This document shows positions 8,422 through 54,350 of a stretch of DNA of 64,000 nt, piece by piece (within the stretch, counting starts at the first letter, position 1; the number at the start of each line of letters is the position of its first letter). The translations under genes and the position numbers were made by a program. The notes beneath the pieces were generated by a model, which saw only the letters and a list, made by a program, of their open reading frames with translations, had not been told where the DNA came from and searched no databases. The stretch spans positions 245,757 through 309,756 of IMG/VR virus record IMGVR_UViG_3300042473_001540, one strand, 5' to 3'.

Positions 8422-8676
8422 ATGTTCAAGTTCGAGCTGGACCAGACTGTCTACTATCTCATGGACAACCGGGTGTGCAGTGCTCCGGTGTTGTGCCGCA
8501 TGCTGGTGGAGAATCAGCATCCCAAGTGGAATGCCACCGACAAGCAGGCGGAGTTTTTCCAGCGTTTTGGTCCCTGCCGTGTGGTGTATGCCACCTGCCA
8601 TGGAGAGCATGAAGAAGCCATGCTGTTTGAGAGCCGCGAGGCACTGGCTGCTGCCATCATTGCGGAACAGATCTAA
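8422..8676 (+). CDS. hypothetical protein
   Basis: MFKFELDQTVYY, GAGG RBS. Confidence 0.7.
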   Translation: MFKFELDQTVYYLMDNRVCSAPVLCRMLVENQHPKWNATDKQAEFFQRFGPCRVVYATCHGEHEEAMLFESREALAAAIIAEQI

Positions 8677-8915
8677 TGACTGCTGAAGGAAAAGTGCTGT
8701 ATCAGCGGAATACAATGGGCTATTGGATCTTGCGACATCCATCAGGGTTGTATCCTGTTGATACAACACAGGGTTTTTGGAGTAATCATAGGGTGGCAGC
8801 CATGAGATTCCACACAAAAGAGGAAGCTGATGCCTGTGCTGCCTATCTCTCCACGAGTGTTATAAGCGGGATCAAATGTAACATGCTCTTGGTGGAGATG
8901 TTGTTTCAGATGTAA
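8676..8915 (+). CDS. hypothetical protein
   Basis: TAATG coupling to upstream gene. Confidence 0.55.
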   Translation: MTAEGKVLYQRNTMGYWILRHPSGLYPVDTTQGFWSNHRVAAMRFHTKEEADACAAYLSTSVISGIKCNMLLVEMLFQM

Positions 8916-8955
8916 ACAACGCTTTTGGTATCAATATCTAACCCACGGGGTAATT

Positions 8956-9432
8956 ATGAACGGCGCCGGACATGCAGACTACTGTAACATACGAATCAGT
9001 CGAGAAGGGCTAGCACGCGGCAAGCTCGAGCTAGTGCATCGATATGTAATCTACTTTGCACGACAGTATGTGACTGATTATCTTACAGGAACTGTAAGCG
9101 GAGCACATCTCAAGATTGGCCAAAGCACTTTGTTCAATTCGCTGCAACGTGGCCGAAACCAAGCGGGTGGTGATTTTAGAATTCTAGCTGAGCTGTGTTT
9201 TCAATCAGCTGATGCTGCCAAACAGGCAGAAAAATATGCTCATTATCTTTTCATGAACGATCAGGTACGCGGTCCGCAAAATCAGCAAGAATTGTTCAAC
9301 ATCCCTGATCAAGATGTTGAAACCCGTGCAAAGGCGCTGATTGCCTATTGCACCACCAACAATGATCATCCGTTGCCTTTTGTTGAGGCCCTGTTGTTTA
9401 CAGGCGGACAAGAAACCGTGGATATTATCTGA
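8956..9432 (+). CDS. GIY-YIG-like / T5orf172-like domain protein
   Basis: YVIYF..LKIGQST..R..Q..AEKYAH pattern. Confidence 0.4.
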   Translation: MNGAGHADYCNIRISREGLARGKLELVHRYVIYFARQYVTDYLTGTVSGAHLKIGQSTLFNSLQRGRNQAGGDFRILAELCFQSADAAKQAEKYAHYLFMNDQVRGPQNQQELFNIPDQDVETRAKALIAYCTTNNDHPLPFVEALLFTGGQETVDII

Positions 9433-9439
9433 GGCAGAC

Positions 9440-9706
9440 ATGAGCAAAAATCCCACTTCCAACCAAATCATCTCTTGGGTCAAAGCCGAAGCGCAAGCTC
9501 GCCTAGACAATGCTGGTTATTCTGGACGTTATGATGATGGTGGATACGGCGCTCTGCTGCGTGAGGTAGAGGCTTATCAAGCCGGCCAGGCCGGCACAGT
9601 GCCAGGCTCTTGGGAACCCATCATTGAGAAACATGTTCGGCAGCAGGATGCTGAGTATCAAGAGTATCTCAGGCTAGCCAACAAGTTTGGTCCACCAAAA
9701 AATTAA
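9440..9706 (+). CDS. hypothetical protein
   Basis: GAGG RBS before ATG 9440. Confidence 0.65.
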   Translation: MSKNPTSNQIISWVKAEAQARLDNAGYSGRYDDGGYGALLREVEAYQAGQAGTVPGSWEPIIEKHVRQQDAEYQEYLRLANKFGPPKN

Positions 9707-9764
9707 GGCTAGACATAAAACAGCATCCTGCTATAATGCCCACATAGAGAAAAGGAACCCAGCC

Positions 9765-10439
9765 GTGAGTGACGAAATTGATCGCTTGCTGAAGTTTGAC
9801 CCACTGGACACAGCTGAGCGCATGCTGGGCCGCAACAATCCCGATAGTGTCAACCTTGGTATGGCGCTGCACGTCAGCCACAACCAGCGCAAGCAAAGGG
9901 CTCTAGAGGAGTTGGGCGACACCACCTTCAGCAACCGGCTGGTTCGCTACCAGGAGATCATCACCCTCATGGGTTTTGAGTTGGCGCTGGAGCTGCCCTT
10001 TGTGGTACGGGGATACGACAGCACTGATCCCGATCGTGAAGAACGCTATTTCATCTACGCTCACCGGGACGGGCTGCTGCTGTGTTTCGACACCTTCTGC
10101 GGTGACCATGTGAACGGTGCAAAAGTCTACTACAACTGGATTCCTCACAGCGGCACAGACCGTTGGTGCTACACCAGCAGCGGGCATTTTGAGGGCTATG
10201 TAGACCAGGAAAATCCCGGTGTGTGGTGTGGCGACCATGATGCTCGCGAGGCACTGCGCCACAAGATCCAAGGCCTGCAGAGTGCTGGCGATCTCCTGCC
10301 CCAGTGGAGGCATCGTCCTTGGCTTTGGTTGCTGCACTACCAGGACACCAAGGACACCAACTACGATCATGCAGCCATCACCCAGAGCCGTATCAAGATG
10401 TGCCCCGAGTGGGTGCAAAACATGATTGGCGCAGTATGA
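9765..10439 (+). CDS. hypothetical protein
   Basis: GTG start after AAGGA; promoter 9710-9737. Confidence 0.75.
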   Translation: MSDEIDRLLKFDPLDTAERMLGRNNPDSVNLGMALHVSHNQRKQRALEELGDTTFSNRLVRYQEIITLMGFELALELPFVVRGYDSTDPDREERYFIYAHRDGLLLCFDTFCGDHVNGAKVYYNWIPHSGTDRWCYTSSGHFEGYVDQENPGVWCGDHDAREALRHKIQGLQSAGDLLPQWRHRPWLWLLHYQDTKDTNYDHAAITQSRIKMCPEWVQNMIGAV

Positions 10440-46245: not shown

Positions 46246-48023
46246 ACTTGATCATCCTCAAAAACGTCACAATCAAAAACTTCATGAGTGTGGGTGCTGT
46301 TACACAATCAGTTACTCTCACACAACCTGGCTTGACTCTTGTATTGGGCGAGAATCTAGACTTGGGCGGCAACGGCAACCGGAATGGTGTTGGCAAATCG
46401 ACGCTGATTTCAGCCATTTGTTATGCCCTGTATGGTCAAGCTCTTACTAACATCAAGAAAAACAATCTCATCAACAGCATCAACAAAAAGAACATGGTGG
46501 TGAGTATTGAGTTTGAAGCCCACGGCAACAGCTACAAAATTGAACGTGGCCGTGCCCCTAGTTTTTTCCGCTATGTTGTAAATGATGAATCAGTAAATGA
46601 AAACAAAAGTGCAGACGAAGCTCAAGGCGAAAACAAAGATACTCAGAAAGAGATTGAGAAGGTATTGGGCATCAGCCACACCATGTTCAAACACATTGTG
46701 GCTTTGAACACCTATACTGAGCCATTTTTGAGCATGGGTGCTGGAAAACAGCGAGAAATAATTGAAGAGCTGTTGGGAATTACATTACTGTCTCAGAAGG
46801 CAGAAAACCTCAAAAAGCTTATTCAAACAACCAAACAAACTATTGAACAAGAAGAGTTCAAAATACATACTATCAAAAACAGCAATACACGTATTTTGAG
46901 CACTATTGAAAGTTTGAATCAAAAAACCCAACAGTGGGATACTCAACATCAGAACAAAATTCAAGACTTGGAAAATGCACTAGATGCTTTGAGTCATCTT
47001 GATGTTGAGCAGGAAATTCAAAGTCACAAAGACAATCTTGTGTATCGTGAACTTCAAACAGCATTGAAGAATGTGCGCAGCCAAAGCCAAACAAAAACAC
47101 AGCATGGAACACAGCTGAAGGCGCAACAAAACAACTGGTTAACTCAGTATAGTCAAATTCAAGACCACAACTGCGCAATGTGTGGTCAAAAGATTCATGA
47201 CGAGAAACAAACACATCTGCTGGACGACCTTGAGCACAAAATTACCAAACTGGACAGCAGCATTCAAACACTGGAACAGGAATGCCTGAGTTTGACACAA
47301 GAACTGGATGAGCTCATGGGTCTGTCTAGTGCTGTATCGCTAAACCAAACATTTTACAAAAGCATTGATGAGGCATATGAGCATCGAAACAGTCTCACAC
47401 TTCTTAGTGGTGAACTGGACAAACTTAAGCTTGAAACCAATCCTTATCAAGCCCAAGTGGGTAATTTAAATGACACACTGCAAGAAGTCACTTATGATTC
47501 ACTAAATGAACTCAGCCAACTCAAAGACCATCAAGAGTTTCTCTTGAAGCTGCTAACAAACAAAGACAGCTTCATCCGAAAGCGTATTATTGATCAAAAC
47601 CTCAGCTACTTGAATCACAGACTGGGTGAATATCTAGCTGGATTGATGTTGCCACACCAAGTTAAATTCAGCAACGACTTGGGAGTTGAGATCATGCATA
47701 TGGGCGTAGACTTTGACTTTGACAGTCTCAGCCGAGGTGAACGCACAAGAGTTTGTTTGGCACTCAGCTGGGCATTCCGAGACATTTTTGAAAACATGAA
47801 CACCAGCATCAACTTCATGGCTGTTGATGAGATCCTTGATGTGGGACTTGACAGCACAGGACTTGAAAGATCTCTAGAGACGCTTAAGGCTATGAGCAGA
47901 GATCGGAACAAGAACATTTTGTTGATCTCACATAGAGAAGAGCTAACAAGTCGCTGCGATCGAGTTTTGTATGTTATCAAAGAGTTAGGTTTCACTCGTT
48001 TCAGCTATGAAAGCGGTGAGTAA
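46242..48023 (+). CDS. gp46: recombination ATPase subunit (Rad50/SbcC-like)
   Basis: NGVGKST Walker A, CAMC zinc hook, LSRGE signature, AVDEILD Walker B, ISH. Confidence 0.93.
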   Translation: MNLIILKNVTIKNFMSVGAVTQSVTLTQPGLTLVLGENLDLGGNGNRNGVGKSTLISAICYALYGQALTNIKKNNLINSINKKNMVVSIEFEAHGNSYKIERGRAPSFFRYVVNDESVNENKSADEAQGENKDTQKEIEKVLGISHTMFKHIVALNTYTEPFLSMGAGKQREIIEELLGITLLSQKAENLKKLIQTTKQTIEQEEFKIHTIKNSNTRILSTIESLNQKTQQWDTQHQNKIQDLENALDALSHLDVEQEIQSHKDNLVYRELQTALKNVRSQSQTKTQHGTQLKAQQNNWLTQYSQIQDHNCAMCGQKIHDEKQTHLLDDLEHKITKLDSSIQTLEQECLSLTQELDELMGLSSAVSLNQTFYKSIDEAYEHRNSLTLLSGELDKLKLETNPYQAQVGNLNDTLQEVTYDSLNELSQLKDHQEFLLKLLTNKDSFIRKRIIDQNLSYLNHRLGEYLAGLMLPHQVKFSNDLGVEIMHMGVDFDFDSLSRGERTRVCLALSWAFRDIFENMNTSINFMAVDEILDVGLDSTGLERSLETLKAMSRDRNKNILLISHREELTSRCDRVLYVIKELGFTRFSYESGE

Positions 48024-48052
48024 TTATCTGTACTCCATAAATATAGATATAT

Positions 48053-48082
48053 GCCGGTCACGACCCTGGCAGGTCCACCGGC
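48053..48082 (+). promoter_or_regulatory. leader hairpin between late promoter (TAAATA 48038-48043) and homing endonuclease RBS
   Basis: GCCGGT/ACCGGC outer and GACC/GGTC inner stems. Confidence 0.55.
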
Positions 48083-48108
48083 TCTATCGCTTTAAGGGAG
48101 CAACAGCT

Positions 48109-48933
48109 ATGTCTATTTATCGTAATATCAAACCCTTTGGGTTTTATGTGTATGCCTACTTAAGAAAAACAACATCCAACAATGGTCCTGCAGGAACCCC
48201 TTATTATATTGGAAAAGGGACCGGCATACGTTACAAAGAAAACCACGGAACTCTACCTGTACCAAAAGAAGCATGGAGGATTGTTGTCCTTGAACAAGGA
48301 TTAACTAATCTTGGTGCTGTTGCGCTCGAAAGAAGGCTGATACTCTGGTGGGGACGCCTGGATAATAACACAGGTATATTACACAATCGAACTGATGGCG
48401 GGGATGGGGCAGTTGGGAAGATAGTCTCTGATGAATCAAGAATGAAAGCAAGTGTTAACAATTGTGGCAAAAAAAGAAGTGCAGAAACAATCAAGAACAT
48501 AAAAGATGCATTATCTCTTATCGACAGGTCAGGAGAGAATCATCCGTTATATGGCAAAAAGCATTCTGATGAAGCTAGATCTAAAATGAGCGAAGCTAAA
48601 AAAGGCAGGTCCTATGAAGAAATTTATGGCCCAAAAGCAGAAGAGATGCGAGCTGCACGCTCACAAAAATCTCGGGGACGAAGTCTGTCTGCTGAGACCA
48701 AAGAAAAGATAAGTTTAGCAAATCGAGGCAAGAAAAAACCTGCAGGCTTTGGAGTCCGAATGTCCGCAGTAAGGTCTGGCCAAAAAGTCTCTGAAGAAAT
48801 TTTGAAGAAGAGAGCACAGATATTCGAAGCAACAAAACAAACTTGTGAACATTGCGGGAATATCTTTGGTTTAGCGAACTATATCAGATGGCATGGTCCT
48901 AATTGCAAAACTCAACCTAACCAACTACTATAG
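48109..48933 (+). CDS. GIY-YIG homing endonuclease with NUMOD3 repeats
   Basis: FYVYAY..YYIGKG..RY; N.TDGGDG; HPLYGKKHSDE.R.KMSEAKKG. Confidence 0.9.
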   Translation: MSIYRNIKPFGFYVYAYLRKTTSNNGPAGTPYYIGKGTGIRYKENHGTLPVPKEAWRIVVLEQGLTNLGAVALERRLILWWGRLDNNTGILHNRTDGGDGAVGKIVSDESRMKASVNNCGKKRSAETIKNIKDALSLIDRSGENHPLYGKKHSDEARSKMSEAKKGRSYEEIYGPKAEEMRAARSQKSRGRSLSAETKEKISLANRGKKKPAGFGVRMSAVRSGQKVSEEILKKRAQIFEATKQTCEHCGNIFGLANYIRWHGPNCKTQPNQLL

Positions 48934-48948
48934 GCGATTCGATTGGGA

Positions 48949-49464
48949 TTATACACCAGCAGTATAACTCAGTTCAGCAATCTTCAGCTTGTTTTGTTCA
49001 AAAAATGGCTCAAACTCTGTTATTACAAAGGTTTTGTAACGTGCGTGGTTTTCAACCGTGAAGTCAGCCAAATGTTTTTGATCAAAACAAGCATAACTTC
49101 CTTTGTGATTGATGCGTATGACAACAAACCACAAATCTTCTGGATCACATGTGTCAAGTGTTTGCTCTATCCAAGCATCCAGTTGTTTGATATCTCCATT
49201 GCACATGAGTCGATGCCACGGAAAGTCTTGATAAAACTTACTTTCAATCACCAGCTTTTTCATATGGGAAGGTGGAATGAGATCACTTTTGAAGTAGCTG
49301 ATTTGCGTAGCATCCATAGTGTCTTTTCTCTTGGTGTTTGCTCCTCCAATGAAGGCACCAGAATTAGGAACCCTAATAAATTTGGCTTCATATAACGTTG
49401 TGAGAAACTTGGCTATCCGTAATTCGCCTGCATTTCCTTTTGCCTTGCCTTTGGACCCTGCCAT
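48949..49464 (-). CDS. Holliday junction resolvase (Hjc-like PD-(D/E)xK)
   Basis: KGNAGELRIA, RVPNSGA, SDL, VIESKFY. Confidence 0.8.
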   Translation of the reverse strand: MAGSKGKAKGNAGELRIAKFLTTLYEAKFIRVPNSGAFIGGANTKRKDTMDATQISYFKSDLIPPSHMKKLVIESKFYQDFPWHRLMCNGDIKQLDAWIEQTLDTCDPEDLWFVVIRINHKGSYACFDQKHLADFTVENHARYKTFVITEFEPFFEQNKLKIAELSYTAGV

Positions 49465-49503
49465 ATGTTTTTTCCTGTAATCCAGAAAAAGCTCTGGAAG
49501 TCT

Positions 49504-50388: not shown

Positions 50389-50752
50389 GTGGCTTTATAT
50401 GATGGTGTAGTGTCCATCCGTATCTACCAGGCGCGAAGGCCGGGGAAAATTGCGTATGAGGGTTTACGGTTCTATGCCCTCGCCACAAAAGTGAACAAAA
50501 AGGATCCAGCCTCTCACTGTCCCGTGACGCTGGAAGGGGTTCAGTCAACAGCCTGTCTGACTGAATTCCCTGCGTGTGTGATGAGCACATAACCGAGAAG
50601 GCAGCTCCATGAGCATAAGTCCGAGAAGAGAGTCAGGAACGCTGGAAATAGGTTCTCCGCCAGCTGGAAGCAATTCCCAAGACGAGACAGGCAGGCCGAA
50701 GCCCTATACGAAAGCCTTTTCACACTTCTCCTCCCGGTGGGGAGAAGTGTGA
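50389..50752 (+). ncRNA. large structured non-coding RNA downstream of the TnpB-like gene
   Basis: At least 6 local hairpins, long-range stems 50389-93/50482-86 and 50443-53/50670-78, 8-bp pairing 50551-58/50685-92; G-U pairs favour + strand. Confidence 0.75.
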
Positions 50753-50872
50753 CTTCCTCCCTAACGAAATACCCAGAACTATTATCAGTCCAACAAGTAT
50801 CCTATTCCAGATCCAATAATATCATCAATAAGATCATTGAGATTCATACTAGATCACGCCCAGCTAAAATTA

Positions 50873-51040
50873 TCACTTCTTTGATTGAGCCTTCCTATAA
50901 GCTTCGGCTTGCATCTCATAGTGTTTGGAAATAGTTCCACTCAAAGATTTCATCTGTGAAGTGGTGAGACGCCAAGCTTCACTGTAGGTGAGTCCTCCGT
51001 TCATGTAATACACTAGGTTGGCAATATCGCTTTCAATCAT
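50873..51040 (-). CDS. gp51-like baseplate hub assembly protein; may be translated as -1 frameshift extension of upstream gene (not in ORF track)
   Basis: MIESDIANLVYYMNGGLTYSEAWRLT..; frame open back to the T TTT TTC heptamer at 51112-51118. Confidence 0.7.
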   Translation of the reverse strand: MIESDIANLVYYMNGGLTYSEAWRLTTSQMKSLSGTISKHYEMQAEAYRKAQSKK

Positions 51041-51105
51041 TTCCACTTCTTTTTCGCAGCTTCTCAGTACTTGGGTGATGGCTACATGATCACCCCTGAG
51101 AAGCT

Positions 51106-51939
51106 TTAGTCGAAAAAACTTGTGGGATCAAAGTCAATTGACTGGCTCCAAGTGTGTGAGCAACCGTCGCATTGAAAAGAGGTTTCGGTATCAATACCAG
51201 TTTTGTTGAGCTCTTTCAACTTGTCGATGATGGCGTTGGCACTGGTTGTGGGAATACCTTTCACAAACTCTTGAATGTATTCTTGATTGGTGACCAGTTC
51301 ACCACTACTGATTATTTTGATTTCAGTTATGCTCATGGCCATGATGTCCAATGTGCGTTTGGCCATGTGATTCACTTGTTTGGTCACACTACTGATCTTT
51401 TCTGCATCAGTTGTGTCTGTTTCTTGTAACACTTTGATGCTTCTGGCTTGTTCCACTTCATTCAACAGTTGTAGATTTCTCTGCTCAAAGTTGTAAGGAC
51501 GCAGGAAAACTTGGAGTGCTCCATCTATTTCAATATAGGTGGGGCCTTCAACATAAGTTTGTGTTTCGATAAATGCAGAGAGGTCTATACCAAAGTTGTG
51601 CTCTTTTCCACAACTGGGACATGTGGTGTCTATTTCCATAGTTGACCCTGCACTGGCAATTCTTATGGCAACAAGTAGGGTGTTGATGTCAGGCTCCACA
51701 AGCTTCTTGGGATCTTTGACTCCAGGAACACAGTTTCGGAAAACACTCAACAATGCATCGCCATTCAACAGCGCATCAGGAGTTTTCAACATGATTTGAT
51801 CAATAGCAGTCAACGGATACACTGCCATTTCGCCATTGGCTGAAGTCTCAAGGAAATCACTAGGATAAAATTTGCCTCGTGTTGGCAATTGTGCATAGGC
51901 CTTGGGTGTGTGAAAGTATTGACTCAATGGATTACTCAT
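51106..51939 (-). CDS. baseplate hub assembly chaperone (gp26-like)
   Basis: NPL..YF..P..Y..LPTRGKFY, T.DE/Q..LKTPDALLNG, D...LLVAIRIAS, CPSC..CDGC; TAAATA on minus at 51977-51982. Confidence 0.8.
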   Translation of the reverse strand: MSNPLSQYFHTPKAYAQLPTRGKFYPSDFLETSANGEMAVYPLTAIDQIMLKTPDALLNGDALLSVFRNCVPGVKDPKKLVEPDINTLLVAIRIASAGSTMEIDTTCPSCGKEHNFGIDLSAFIETQTYVEGPTYIEIDGALQVFLRPYNFEQRNLQLLNEVEQARSIKVLQETDTTDAEKISSVTKQVNHMAKRTLDIMAMSITEIKIISSGELVTNQEYIQEFVKGIPTTSANAIIDKLKELNKTGIDTETSFQCDGCSHTWSQSIDFDPTSFFD

Positions 51940-52025: not shown

Positions 52026-54350
52026 ATGAGTTTTACAGCTAGTGAATTGAAAGATATCAGCAAGAATTGGGCCCAGGAGCGCACTCTCGGAGAGTTGCGT
52101 GACAAGATGGCGTCAAACAACAGTATTTTGGCTGCTATTGCTAAAGAAAAGTTCAACTTAGATGCTGCAACTATTCGCTCATTTGAAGATGCTATTGATG
52201 ATGCCAAAGATGGCTTGACAGAACTTCAAAATAGTGCGGAGAAAGCTAAAAGGGCTCAGGTCAATCAACTGCGTCATGAACAACGCATGCAAGGCTATGA
52301 ACAGGAAATCAAAGGCAATTACAAACGCAGTGTTGATGATTTACGCTCAAGCTTAGACAAAATGAGTCGATTTGACAGCAGTAGACTGTATGAAGGTGTC
52401 ACAAGTGGTATCAACAGCTTAAGCTATAATTTCCGTAAGGCAGATGGTAGTGCAACTGGGTTAAGCACAGCATTTGCTGGCTTGAACAAAGTGGTGGCTG
52501 TTGTTGCTGCTGGTGTGGGAATTTTTGCTAGCGGAATGCCAGCTTTTCAGGCCATGGCAAACACCGGTGTTACTTTTGGCGGCAGTCTTGAAAAGATGCA
52601 GGAAATGGTTGGTCGTACAGGTTTGAAGCTGGAAGAGTTTCAAGGACTTGTTGGGCAATTTGGTACTACAATTGGTGGAGTGGGTGAAGAAAATTTTGCC
52701 AAATTGATTCGGGCAACACAAACAGCTACTAGGGAGTTTGGTATGTACGGCCAGACGTCTCAACAACAGGCTGAGTCCGTTAGTTTCTTTGTGAACAGCT
52801 TAGTCGAAGGTGGGCTTTCATTCCAGCAAGCAAGCGCAATGAACGAACAAGGCACTGCACAATATTTGCGTGAGCTTACAGCACTTACTATTTTAACTGG
52901 CAAAGATAGAAAAACATTAGAGGCTAGACAAAAAGAGCTAGATCAAGATAGATTTATTAGACTTCGGGTTAGGCAATTGGAACAGACCAATCCTGAAGCG
53001 GCAGCAACATTTAAGAAAAACACTGGCCAATTGGCAATGGACATAGGGCCTAAATTGACAAGAGCCATAGCAGGCATGCAATATGGGCTTATGCCTCCTG
53101 ACGAGCAAATGCGCGCCTTTATGAGCATAGGCGGGACAATGTCTGGAATGGAGCAATTGTCTAGGCAGCTAACATCAGGATCTACCTTAGACATGATGGA
53201 AGGAGCTGGGAATTTAAAACGTAATTTTAGCCAAGGACAGGGCTTAAATGATTTTGTAACACAGGCGTATCTGGGAAGTAAGTACGCAGGAGCAGGTGAC
53301 ATAGCTGATGAATTATATGGAGACGCAGCACGGGCAAAGGCGGCTGAAGCGCAGCCAGGAGGTATGCAGAGGATACTTGATATCTTCACCGGAAGAGGTG
53401 GAAACTTAGATCAAGCTACTACTGCCATGCAAAAAGTGACTATGGATACTGCTCGTATCACTGGTGACTTCAAGGCAGCGCTCTGGGCAGCTACACAACA
53501 GTTGGGCTTGTTTACGAAAGTTCTTGAACCCTTGGCAGCAGCAACTGGCGCAGGCGCAGGAGCAGCAAACTCATTTTATGGAATGGCTGCCAGTGGTATG
53601 TCCGGAGCAGCTTCGGCCTTAATGACAGGAGCTGCTGTGGCATTGATGCCTAAATTGCTGGCAAGTACAGCTTTAAAAGCTGCAATACCACGGTTACTGG
53701 GAGGAGGAGGCTTGGGTTTGACTTCAATGCTGGGCTCAACAGGAATGATGTCTGGTATGATGGGCGGGGCTGGTAATCTTGCTGCTAGAGGAGGGTTGTT
53801 AGGAATGACAGGAAATCGCTTACTAGGTTCGGGGTTAAGTAGAGGCATTTTAGGAGGAGGTTTAGGAGGACTCGCAGGAGGGATGGCGGGCGCAGGACTT
53901 GGTAGCATGCTGGGCCTTGGCTCATTTGGTAGTGGTGCCTTAGGCGTATTAGGTGGGGCAGCAGGCGGCTTCTTGATGGGTGGGCCGGTGGGGGCACTTG
54001 TAGGTGGTCTGGGTGCTGCACTACCTATGCTTATAAGTTCAGCAAGTGCATCAGAAGCAAGGCCAGGTGATCAAACTGGCAATGCTGGTGGTTTATTACA
54101 AGATTCAACTGCACTTGTTGAAATGCAAGCAAGCAGCACGTCATATGTTTCTGCTATGGCTGCACTTGTAAGTAGAGTAGCAGCACAAGCCACTATGACT
54201 AGTCTTGCTCCACCAATAGCACCGCAAAACGATGCACTATTAGGTATGGTCACTACCTTGAACAGCACAGTGGCAGCACAAACACCCTACATCCAAGATC
54301 AAGCAAGACAAGCACGTATCACAGCTGGAATAATTGGTGACTTTGCCTAG
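52026..54350 (+). CDS. tape measure protein (gp29-like)
   Basis: Long helical Ala/Gly-rich protein with GG..GG hydrophobic tract; divergent from gp26-like; TAAATA 51990-51995. Confidence 0.65.
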   Translation: MSFTASELKDISKNWAQERTLGELRDKMASNNSILAAIAKEKFNLDAATIRSFEDAIDDAKDGLTELQNSAEKAKRAQVNQLRHEQRMQGYEQEIKGNYKRSVDDLRSSLDKMSRFDSSRLYEGVTSGINSLSYNFRKADGSATGLSTAFAGLNKVVAVVAAGVGIFASGMPAFQAMANTGVTFGGSLEKMQEMVGRTGLKLEEFQGLVGQFGTTIGGVGEENFAKLIRATQTATREFGMYGQTSQQQAESVSFFVNSLVEGGLSFQQASAMNEQGTAQYLRELTALTILTGKDRKTLEARQKELDQDRFIRLRVRQLEQTNPEAAATFKKNTGQLAMDIGPKLTRAIAGMQYGLMPPDEQMRAFMSIGGTMSGMEQLSRQLTSGSTLDMMEGAGNLKRNFSQGQGLNDFVTQAYLGSKYAGAGDIADELYGDAARAKAAEAQPGGMQRILDIFTGRGGNLDQATTAMQKVTMDTARITGDFKAALWAATQQLGLFTKVLEPLAAATGAGAGAANSFYGMAASGMSGAASALMTGAAVALMPKLLASTALKAAIPRLLGGGGLGLTSMLGSTGMMSGMMGGAGNLAARGGLLGMTGNRLLGSGLSRGILGGGLGGLAGGMAGAGLGSMLGLGSFGSGALGVLGGAAGGFLMGGPVGALVGGLGAALPMLISSASASEARPGDQTGNAGGLLQDSTALVEMQASSTSYVSAMAALVSRVAAQATMTSLAPPIAPQNDALLGMVTTLNSTVAAQTPYIQDQARQARITAGIIGDFA

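Follow-up and report, generated by a model that had tools for sequence, protein, structure and literature searches.

The gp26-like tail-assembly gene of a lake-water jumbo phage ends in a conserved slippery heptamer followed by a hairpin, and we conclude with good, though not complete, confidence that it contains a programmed -1 ribosomal frameshift site that should add a gp51-like tail to some copies of the protein. The same signal occurs in 94 distinct loci, including cyanophages and vibriophage KVP40, and suggests that gp26 and gp51 of phage T4 are the two-gene version of one frameshifted tape-measure chaperone. In this model, most ribosomes stop at TAA 51108-51106 and make a 277-aa protein, while a fraction should slip back one base on U_UUU_UUC, where the downstream hairpin would pause them, and continue in the -1 frame to make a 355-aa product. 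The signal, its conservation and the coding nature of the -1 frame rest on sequence comparison, whereas the transframe protein itself and the slip rate have not been observed. We found no paper linking gp26 or gp51 to frameshifting, although our literature searches did not reach most subscription journals.

The window analysed is a 64,000-nucleotide stretch of IMG/VR record IMGVR_UViG_3300042473_001540 (positions 245,757 to 309,756 of that record). The relevant features, in window coordinates, are as follows.

51106..51939, minus strand: gp26-like gene, 0-frame product of 277 aa, PF12322 T4_baseplate family
51112..51118, minus strand: slippery heptamer T_TTT_TTC, encoding Phe-Phe
51106..51111, minus strand: 6-nt spacer GACTAA, including the 0-frame stop TAA (51108-51106)
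51058..51105, minus strand: two-part hairpin, the predicted frameshift stimulator
50873..51118, minus strand: -1 frame extension of 81 codons, from FFRLKLL... to TGA 50875-50873
50873..51040, minus strand: small ORF as gene callers see it (55 aa from ATG 51040), the distal part of the extension
52026..54350, plus strand: divergently transcribed 774-aa protein, the candidate tape-measure protein

A conserved slippery site at the end of the gp26-like gene

A sequence-only reading had proposed that this gene, ending AGT TTT TTC GAC TAA, is fused by a -1 frameshift to the small downstream ORF, and all of its coordinates are correct. The heptamer T TTT TTC lies in the X XXY YYZ register of the 0 frame, and the -1 frame reads FFRLKLLRGDHVAITQVLRSCEKEVE-MIESD... 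for 81 codons, with its first ATG at 51040. The predicted transframe protein comprises residues 1-274 of the 0 frame plus these 81 residues. Within the window alone the evidence is weak, since 22 stop-free codons between the TAA and the ATG happen by chance about one time in three; it is comparison with relatives that makes the case strong.

The 0-frame product matches PF12322 (5.5e-18; 65.9 bits against a cut-off of 24.5) and phrog_150 (4.5e-20), and has four invariant Cys (C107, C110, C257, C260) and an invariant C-terminal Phe-Phe. An AlphaFold2 model has a pLDDT of 87.4. A nucleotide search of the region against phages found nothing, so related loci were collected by protein-level searches; a divergent alignment contained no block conserved enough for this purpose, but a single protein and an alignment of closer homologs sufficed. 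The heptamer is present, in frame and at the conserved Phe-Phe, in 33 of 33 distinct relatives of the jumbo-phage group, and also in 59 of 59 distinct cyanophage-type contigs and in S-PM2 and KVP40. The preceding codon always ends in T, although it encodes different amino acids (S, H, N, R, A or T in the jumbo-phage group, and also TCT (Ser) and GAT (Asp) among cyanophages). The first Phe is always TTT, while Phe codons elsewhere in these genes are 224 TTT to 108 TTC. In the closest clade, the 0-frame stop is always the second codon after the heptamer.

The -1 frame and the predicted stimulatory hairpin

The -1 frame is coding from the slip site onward. Among 19 aligned sequences it contains 0 stops, against 46 in the 0 frame and 29 in the +1 frame, and its mean pairwise amino-acid identity is 0.45, against about 0.30 in the other frames. 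The motif FFR-x-x-LL is conserved, while the 0-frame tail after FF varies in length and sequence, and relatives have homologous extensions of 59-83 codons. No start codon is conserved: the first ATG falls anywhere from codon 3 to codon 33, and PA5oct, in which the ORF is not annotated, has no ATG, GTG or TTG in its 75-codon frame.

The hairpin starts 6 nt after the heptamer and consists of an outer 10-bp stem, AGCUUCUCAG/CUGAGAAGCU, and an inner 7-bp stem, GGGUGAU/AUCACCC. Its predicted folding energy is -24.3 kcal/mol (z -3.9 to -4.4), with 0 of 200 shuffles folding as well. RNAalifold predicted no consensus structure on 19 junctions because three sequences use a shifted 3' arm; we therefore tested a structure taken from the single-sequence folds. 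In these 19 sequences, 78% of cells are paired, against 36-46% with slid partners, and the covariation score is 0.292 against 0.09-0.15, with 0/500 shuffles as high, indicating compensatory base changes. A hairpin begins 6-8 nt after the heptamer in most lineages, built from different sequences, but is weak in several RaK2-like phages (z about 0). The variants seen in lake populations lie in unpaired positions or in the spacer codon, not in the stems. A promoter and terminator scan found nothing above chance.

Other routes to the extension

An ordinary two-gene arrangement, in which the small ORF is translated on its own from ATG 51040 or by termination-reinitiation at the gp26 stop and the heptamer merely reflects codon choice for a conserved Phe-Phe, is unlikely. 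Gene callers and all GenBank/RefSeq records examined do annotate two separate CDSs or none, and the ATG in the window is preceded by a weak GGA four bases upstream. An ATG also overlaps or closely follows the 0-frame stop in several lineages (Phosso, Atu_ph07, PBECO4, S-PM2 and some metagenomic loci), so the tail could also be made as a separate peptide by coupled re-initiation, and independent initiation in the window is not excluded. However, internal initiation cannot be the general route given the shifting ATG positions and the absence of any start codon in PA5oct. The residues between the heptamer and the first ATG are conserved as protein and free of stops, and codon bias does not explain the retention of NNT before the heptamer and of TTT TTC in 94 loci. 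T4, the one lineage with a separate full-length gp51, has lost the slippery codons.

Transcriptional slippage is likewise improbable, although we found no RNA sequencing runs for this phage with which to exclude it. The site is a homopolymeric run (T6 here and at least T7 in XacN1 and Xoo-sp13), and one U added by RNA polymerase would give exactly the same protein. Yet six T is probably short for efficient bacterial polymerase slippage, which usually seems to need about nine, and both the strict X_XXY_YYZ register and the covarying hairpin 6-8 nt downstream are conserved; the latter is the hallmark of ribosomal frameshifting and is not needed for polymerase slippage. A sequencing or assembly error, or a recent mutation that split a single gene, is contradicted by the data even though homopolymers are error-prone and the window comes from a metagenome assembly: contigs from four independent studies have the same T run without indels, the arrangement recurs in 94 distinct loci, including many isolate genomes sequenced independently, and the 0-frame stop sits at a fixed distance in each clade.

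Relation to T4 gp26 and gp51 and to tail assembly chaperones

The window's genome contains one PF12322 gene (65 bits in a genome search), as do PA5oct, PBECO4, RaK2, Phosso, S-PM2, KVP40 and Vi01, whereas T4 has two, gp26 and gp51 (8.8e-64 and 3.9e-52). The T4 genes are adjacent and lie next to gene 29, the tape-measure gene. T4 gp51 has an extra C-terminal tail of about 48 aa that starts just after its VF (the counterpart of FF), at KLL, while T4 gp26 encodes its FF as the non-slippery TTC TTT. The description of the small ORF as gp51-like is right in a narrower sense, in that it appears to correspond to the C-terminal tail of T4 gp51 and not to the whole protein. The same-position -1 ORFs of S-PM2 and KVP40 directly follow a PF12322 gene ending T_TTT_TTC NNN stop and align with the T4 gp51 tail (probability 94%, E 8.5e-8). 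They are annotated as independent gp51 genes of 55-57 aa, none of the records examined marks ribosomal slippage, and the KVP40 record already notes similarity to about 40 residues at the C-terminus of T4 gp51. The window's extension is longer by an internal segment of about 16 residues, and the jumbo-phage extension aligns with the S-PM2/KVP40 ORF at E 4.8e-4 and with T4 tails at P 0.004-0.007; the fusion profile aligns collinearly with full-length gp51 (E 9e-7). These profile comparisons of the extension are of modest strength and are supplemented by positional equivalence. The extension does not directly hit phrog_634 (PF28602 in precomputed tables) or any Pfam model, and its profile gave nothing against the single T4 gp51 sequence. 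Among the 120 best homologs we found no natural in-frame fusion (those of 378-379 aa carry N-terminal extensions), leaving T4 gp51 as the only in-frame long form found.

We infer that the short and long forms act together as an assembly chaperone for the tape-measure/hub protein, here the divergent 774-aa neighbor and in T4 gp29. The shared PF12322 body would hold the tape measure, and the extension would add a second contact, for example to tube or tube-initiator proteins. The identity of the neighbor as the tape-measure protein, also proposed by the sequence-only reading, is plausible but less firm. It matches no Pfam or PHROG family and shows no similarity to T4 gp29 by BLASTP, but has a helical N-terminal part and a long Gly/Ala/Met-rich hydrophobic stretch. 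Its nearest named ESM-Atlas clusters are the tape-measure families TMP_3 and PhageMin_Tail (score 0.93), its PA5oct homolog is a virion protein by mass spectrometry, and its RaK2 homolog is noted as similar to a tape-measure protein.

The analogy to lambda gpG/gpGT (Levin 1993; Xu, Hendrix and Duda 2004; summarized in PMC5009743) rests on gene order in relatives. In S-PM2, a tube-like gene (phrog_45) is followed by gp26, gp51 and a 1167-aa protein with a tape-measure match (phrog_9570, 5e-21), and Bacillus phage HSE3 has sheath, tube, PF12322 gene, small ORF and tape measure. KVP40 has a tube-like gene, gp26, small gp51, an unassigned 656-aa ORF and gp3; its tape-measure gene is only inferred. 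In the window, the gene instead diverges from the tape-measure candidate. As in lambda, the slip would occur a few codons before the stop of the upstream ORF and yield an abundant short form and a rarer C-terminally extended form, but here the shared body is long (about 275 aa, with a four-Cys site) and the extension short (about 60-80 aa), while in lambda both parts are of similar, modest size. We found no sequence or fold similarity to known tail assembly chaperones: Pfam gave only sub-threshold hits apart from PF12322, none to a chaperone family; no relative was found among PDB sequences; and Foldseek and VIA-align gave only generic helical-hairpin matches.

Frameshifted tail assembly chaperones appear to be near-universal in long-tailed phages, with T4-type phages the notable exception, and T4 gp26 and gp51 are needed for hub assembly by a mechanism that is not understood. 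A broader reading, which we regard as only slightly more likely than not, is that the frameshifted PF12322 gene is the missing tail assembly chaperone of the whole T4 superfamily. The ancestral state would then be one gene making a short and a long form, kept in jumbo RaK2/PA5oct-like phages, cyanophages and KVP40, with a +1 version possibly existing in some Firmicute myoviruses, and T-even phages would have replaced it by gene duplication, giving gp26 (short) and gp51 (long). This would assign a function to two T4 genes that have been genetically essential but mechanistically unexplained since the 1970s. The frameshift would also correct the annotation of at least the 94 loci examined here, where the 'gp51' or 'hypothetical' small ORF, or an unannotated gap, would be the end of a transframe protein.

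T4 gp26 and gp51 are listed as hub assembly chaperones, and gp51 is absent from virions (PMC3004832). Annotation of jumbo-phage homologs gives mixed hints in this respect, as PA5oct gp336 carries no mass-spectrometry note although its neighbors do, while the CBB homolog is annotated 'structural protein', which sits poorly with a chaperone that stays out of virions. The window's protein also gives a weak match, covering only residues 76-156, to the PHROG of P1 PmgB (7.4e-5), which is essential for tail formation, was not found in virions, lies immediately upstream of the tape-measure gene sit, and was proposed to be a tape-measure chaperone (PMC9024508).

The gp26-like gene and its slippery site

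The gene under study lies on the minus strand of a 309,756-bp virus record from a jumbo phage found repeatedly in lake-water metagenomes. The relevant features are as follows:
51939-51106, minus strand: ORF of 277 aa ending AGT TTT TTC GAC TAA
51118-51112, minus strand: T TTT TTC, in the X_XXY_YYZ register of that frame
51105-51058, minus strand: two-part hairpin, the predicted frameshift stimulator
50875-50873, minus strand: TGA that ends the 81-codon -1 frame, which reads FFRLKLL... from the heptamer
51040, minus strand: first ATG of the -1 frame and start of a 55-aa ORF
52026-54350: upstream, divergent ORF of 774 aa, followed by a T4-type portal gene

The 277-aa protein matches Pfam PF12322 T4_baseplate (5.5e-18) and phrog_150 ‘baseplate hub’, while the 55-aa ORF matches nothing. 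The sequence-only reading, which had proposed a -1 ribosomal frameshift that fuses gp26-like and gp51-like genes into a G/GT-type pair, is exact in its description of this site. On its own, however, the observation is weak, because an open linker of 22 codons is common by chance.

To determine whether the site is conserved, we searched by tblastn with the 277-aa protein and found jumbo myoviruses at 25-37% identity, including PA5oct, Phosso, Atu_ph07, the RaK2/PBECO4/GAP32/CBB/Munch group, and Xanthomonas phages. We retrieved 14 of these loci together with metagenomic relatives at 44-91% identity, giving 33 distinct sequences. In every one, the invariant C-terminal Phe-Phe is encoded T_TTT_TTC, with T_TTT_TTT in XacN1 and Xoo-sp13. 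The codon preceding the heptamer is AGT, CAT, AAT, CGT, GCT, or ACT, which represents six amino acids but always ends in T. The first Phe codon is always TTT, although Phe codons elsewhere in these genes are 224 TTT to 108 TTC. A subgroup of metagenomic PF12322 homologs (P0107, P0110, P0116, and P0117; 378-379 aa) carries a Pro/Ala-rich N-terminal extension of about 100 aa and still ends DPTSFF plus a few residues.

The 0-frame stop follows 10 to 40 nt after the start of the heptamer, and the 0-frame tail varies in sequence. The -1 frame, in contrast, reads a conserved FFR-x-x-LL motif and stays open for 72-83 codons into a homologous peptide. In a gap-free alignment of 19 junctions, the -1 frame contains no stops, compared to 46 in the 0 frame and 29 in the +1 frame, and it is also the best conserved of the three as protein. 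The first ATG of the -1 frame lies anywhere between codon 3 and codon 33, and PA5oct has no ATG, GTG, or TTG there and nothing annotated. Judged by the criteria that the sequence-only reading had itself set for rejecting a frameshift, these results favor one.

Six nucleotides after the heptamer, the sequence folds into the two-part hairpin at 51105-51058, with a dG of -24.3 kcal/mol for the 72-nt segment and a z-score of -3.9 to -4.4. Relatives have a hairpin at a spacing of 6-8 nt that is built from different sequences, as in Atu_ph07 (z -6.9), XacN1 (z -4.3), and the 51%-identical locus L028, whose outer stem is entirely different, although hairpins are weak in several RaK2-like phages. With the stems written explicitly on 19 sequences, 78% of cells pair, compared to 36-46% when the partners are slid, and the covariation score of 0.292 (against 0.09-0.15) is reached by 0 of 500 shuffles. 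Single-base variants seen in lake populations lie in unpaired positions or in the spacer codon rather than in the stems, and no indel occurs in the T run in four independent studies.

Relationship to T4 gp26 and gp51

T4 gp26 (208 aa) and gp51 (249 aa) both match PF12322 over their whole domain, at 8.8e-64 and 3.9e-52, respectively. The two are paralogs whose genes are adjacent and divergent (T4 locus L029, NC_000866, 4803-6229). T4 gp26 ends ...EFFELL, encodes its C-terminal Phe-Phe as TTC TTT, which is not slippery, and is followed directly by gene 25, whereas gp51 equals the domain plus a tail of about 48 residues beyond the equivalent point (...DVF-KLLVNPDEI...). Gene counts fit a single-gene origin: the complete genomes of PA5oct, PBECO4, RaK2, and Phosso, the genome studied here, and S-PM2, KVP40, and Vi01 each contain one PF12322 gene, while T4 contains two. 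Two CxxC pairs about 150 residues apart (residues 107-110 and 257-260 of the protein encoded at 51109-51939) are invariant across all PF12322 homologs aligned and suggest one structural zinc site that ties together two β-hairpins; T4 gp51 has CPKC in the first pair but only CC in the second.

S-PM2 and KVP40 carry the same cassette. S-PM2 gp26 ends TCT TTT TTC GCA TAA and KVP40 gp26 ends GAT TTT TTC GTA TAA, after which the -1 frame gives 62 and 59 codons, respectively, which the records annotate from an internal ATG as ‘gp51 baseplate hub assembly catalyst’. The KVP40 record itself notes similarity to about 40 residues at the C-terminus of T4 gp51. All 59 distinct cyanophage-type contigs keep T_TTT_TTC 10 nt before the stop, always after an NNT codon, and are followed by a hairpin.

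Profile comparisons link the tails. The S-PM2/KVP40 -1 peptide aligns with the tails of 92 gp51 homologs (probability 94%, E 8.5e-8), starting right at the slip site, and the jumbo-phage extension aligns with the S-PM2/KVP40 peptide at E 4.8e-4. Against T4 gp51 tails, the jumbo-phage extension gives P 0.004-0.007 in the same register, and a global comparison of the jumbo-phage transframe profile with full-length gp51 gives E 9e-7 and is collinear through the tail. Direct family models do not detect the extension of the phage studied here, and its identity with the gp51 tail therefore rests on position plus moderate profile evidence.

Other lineages depart from this arrangement. In the Firmicute myoviruses Bacillus phage HSE3 (locus L015, 3170-3401) and Streptococcus phage GXN1 (locus L016, 3020-3386), the PF12322 gene ends EFFRP(K/R)F..stop with no -1 heptamer, and the gp51-like tail lies in the +1 frame, where it resembles the S-PM2/KVP40 tail (hhalign E 3e-4). 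A CCC_A or CCC_C site right after FFR could be a +1 slip site. In Salmonella phage Vi01 (loci L063/L067, about 47480-47700 of the record), gp26 ends ...GAA ATT TTC ATT TAA without a canonical heptamer, yet the unannotated -1 frame downstream still encodes a gp51-tail-like peptide (...SIFEISESMPWHLDLL...).

Inferred products and their possible role

Taken together, the comparisons show a conserved slippery site, a covarying hairpin as its predicted stimulator, and a -1 frame under protein-level selection that in at least one phage cannot be reached in any other way, transcriptional slippage on the T run aside. We infer that a fraction of ribosomes make a 355-aa transframe protein (residues 1-274 plus 81) alongside the 277-aa product. 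The sequence-only interpretation is supported: our confidence that a programmed -1 frameshift operates here is high, whereas our confidence that the two products are a tape-measure/hub chaperone pair is only moderate. We hold the combined statement with fairly high confidence, the function being inferred.

Other explanations were also considered. Independent initiation or re-initiation may add to expression in lineages where an ATG overlaps the stop, but it cannot explain PA5oct, the conserved residues that precede the ATG, or the nucleotide-level constraints. Transcriptional slippage on the T run would give the same protein and cannot be excluded without RNA data, although the fixed register and the covarying hairpin point to the ribosome. 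An assembly error is excluded by the absence of indels in the T run across the four studies and by the many isolate genomes.

The evidence for a chaperone role is circumstantial but consistent. In S-PM2, the gene order is a tube-family gene (phrog_45), gp26, gp51, then a 1167-aa protein with a tape-measure match (phrog_9570, 5e-21) and lytic domains; in KVP40, it is a tube-family gene, gp26, gp51, a 656-aa ORF, and gp3; and in HSE3, it is sheath, tube, PF12322 gene, small ORF, and tape measure. In S-PM2 and HSE3, this is the slot that G/GT-type chaperones occupy, and in KVP40 it is the same slot if the 656-aa ORF is the tape measure. A review of T4 lists gp26 and gp51 as hub assembly chaperones and states that gp51 is not in the particle (PMC3004832). 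PmgB of P1 has been proposed to be a tape-measure chaperone (PMC9024508), and the 277-aa protein weakly resembles the PmgB family (7.4e-5). The divergent 774-aa neighbor is tape-measure-like in that its N-terminus is helical, it has a long Gly/Ala/Met-rich hydrophobic region, and its nearest named Atlas clusters are TMP_3 and PhageMin_Tail at a score of 0.93. Its PA5oct homolog is a virion protein by mass spectrometry, and its RaK2 homolog is noted as similar to a tape-measure protein.

Other observations fit this role less well. The predicted structure of the PF12322 protein is confident (pLDDT 87.4), but it has no solved relative and no resemblance to known tail assembly chaperones, and the predicted fold is widespread among myoviruses under ‘baseplate hub’ names. 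The PF12322 protein of Pectobacterium phage CBB (locus L009, 1489-2346) is annotated ‘structural protein’, whereas that of PA5oct carries no mass-spectrometry note, and whether these proteins end up in virions is unsettled, as it long was for T4 gp26.

Prior knowledge and neighboring features

It was already on record that PF12322 covers both gp26 and gp51, that KVP40 and cyanophages have a small ORF resembling the gp51 C-terminus, and that G/GT frameshifts are common in long-tailed phages (PMC5009743). In the literature we could search, which leaves out most subscription journals and so cannot rule out earlier publication, and in the records examined, we found no description of a conserved -1 frameshift cassette in the gp26 gene that joins it to the ‘gp51’ ORF, nor the proposal that this makes T4 gp26 and gp51 the two-gene equivalent of a G/GT pair. 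None of the 18 annotated phage records examined around a PF12322 gene marks slippage. The mechanism and logic, as inferred here, are those of G/GT, but the protein family is unrelated, the proportions differ, and one lineage has resolved the pair into two genes.

About 115 nt downstream of the extension's stop lies a long GC-rich inverted repeat (50715-50760, minus strand; CACACTTCTCC...GGAGAAGTGTG), which may be a transcript-end structure, although it has no T tract and was not listed by the terminator scan. Near-identical genomes of strains carrying the identical gp26-like protein (L053 versus L054/L055) differ in gene content at locus coordinates of about 8500-10350, equivalent to the region around 47000-49500 of the window. 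Here, L053 has an extra NUMOD3 (faint hit) gene and a different set of PDDEXK_15 genes, which looks like mobile homing-endonuclease-type insertions.
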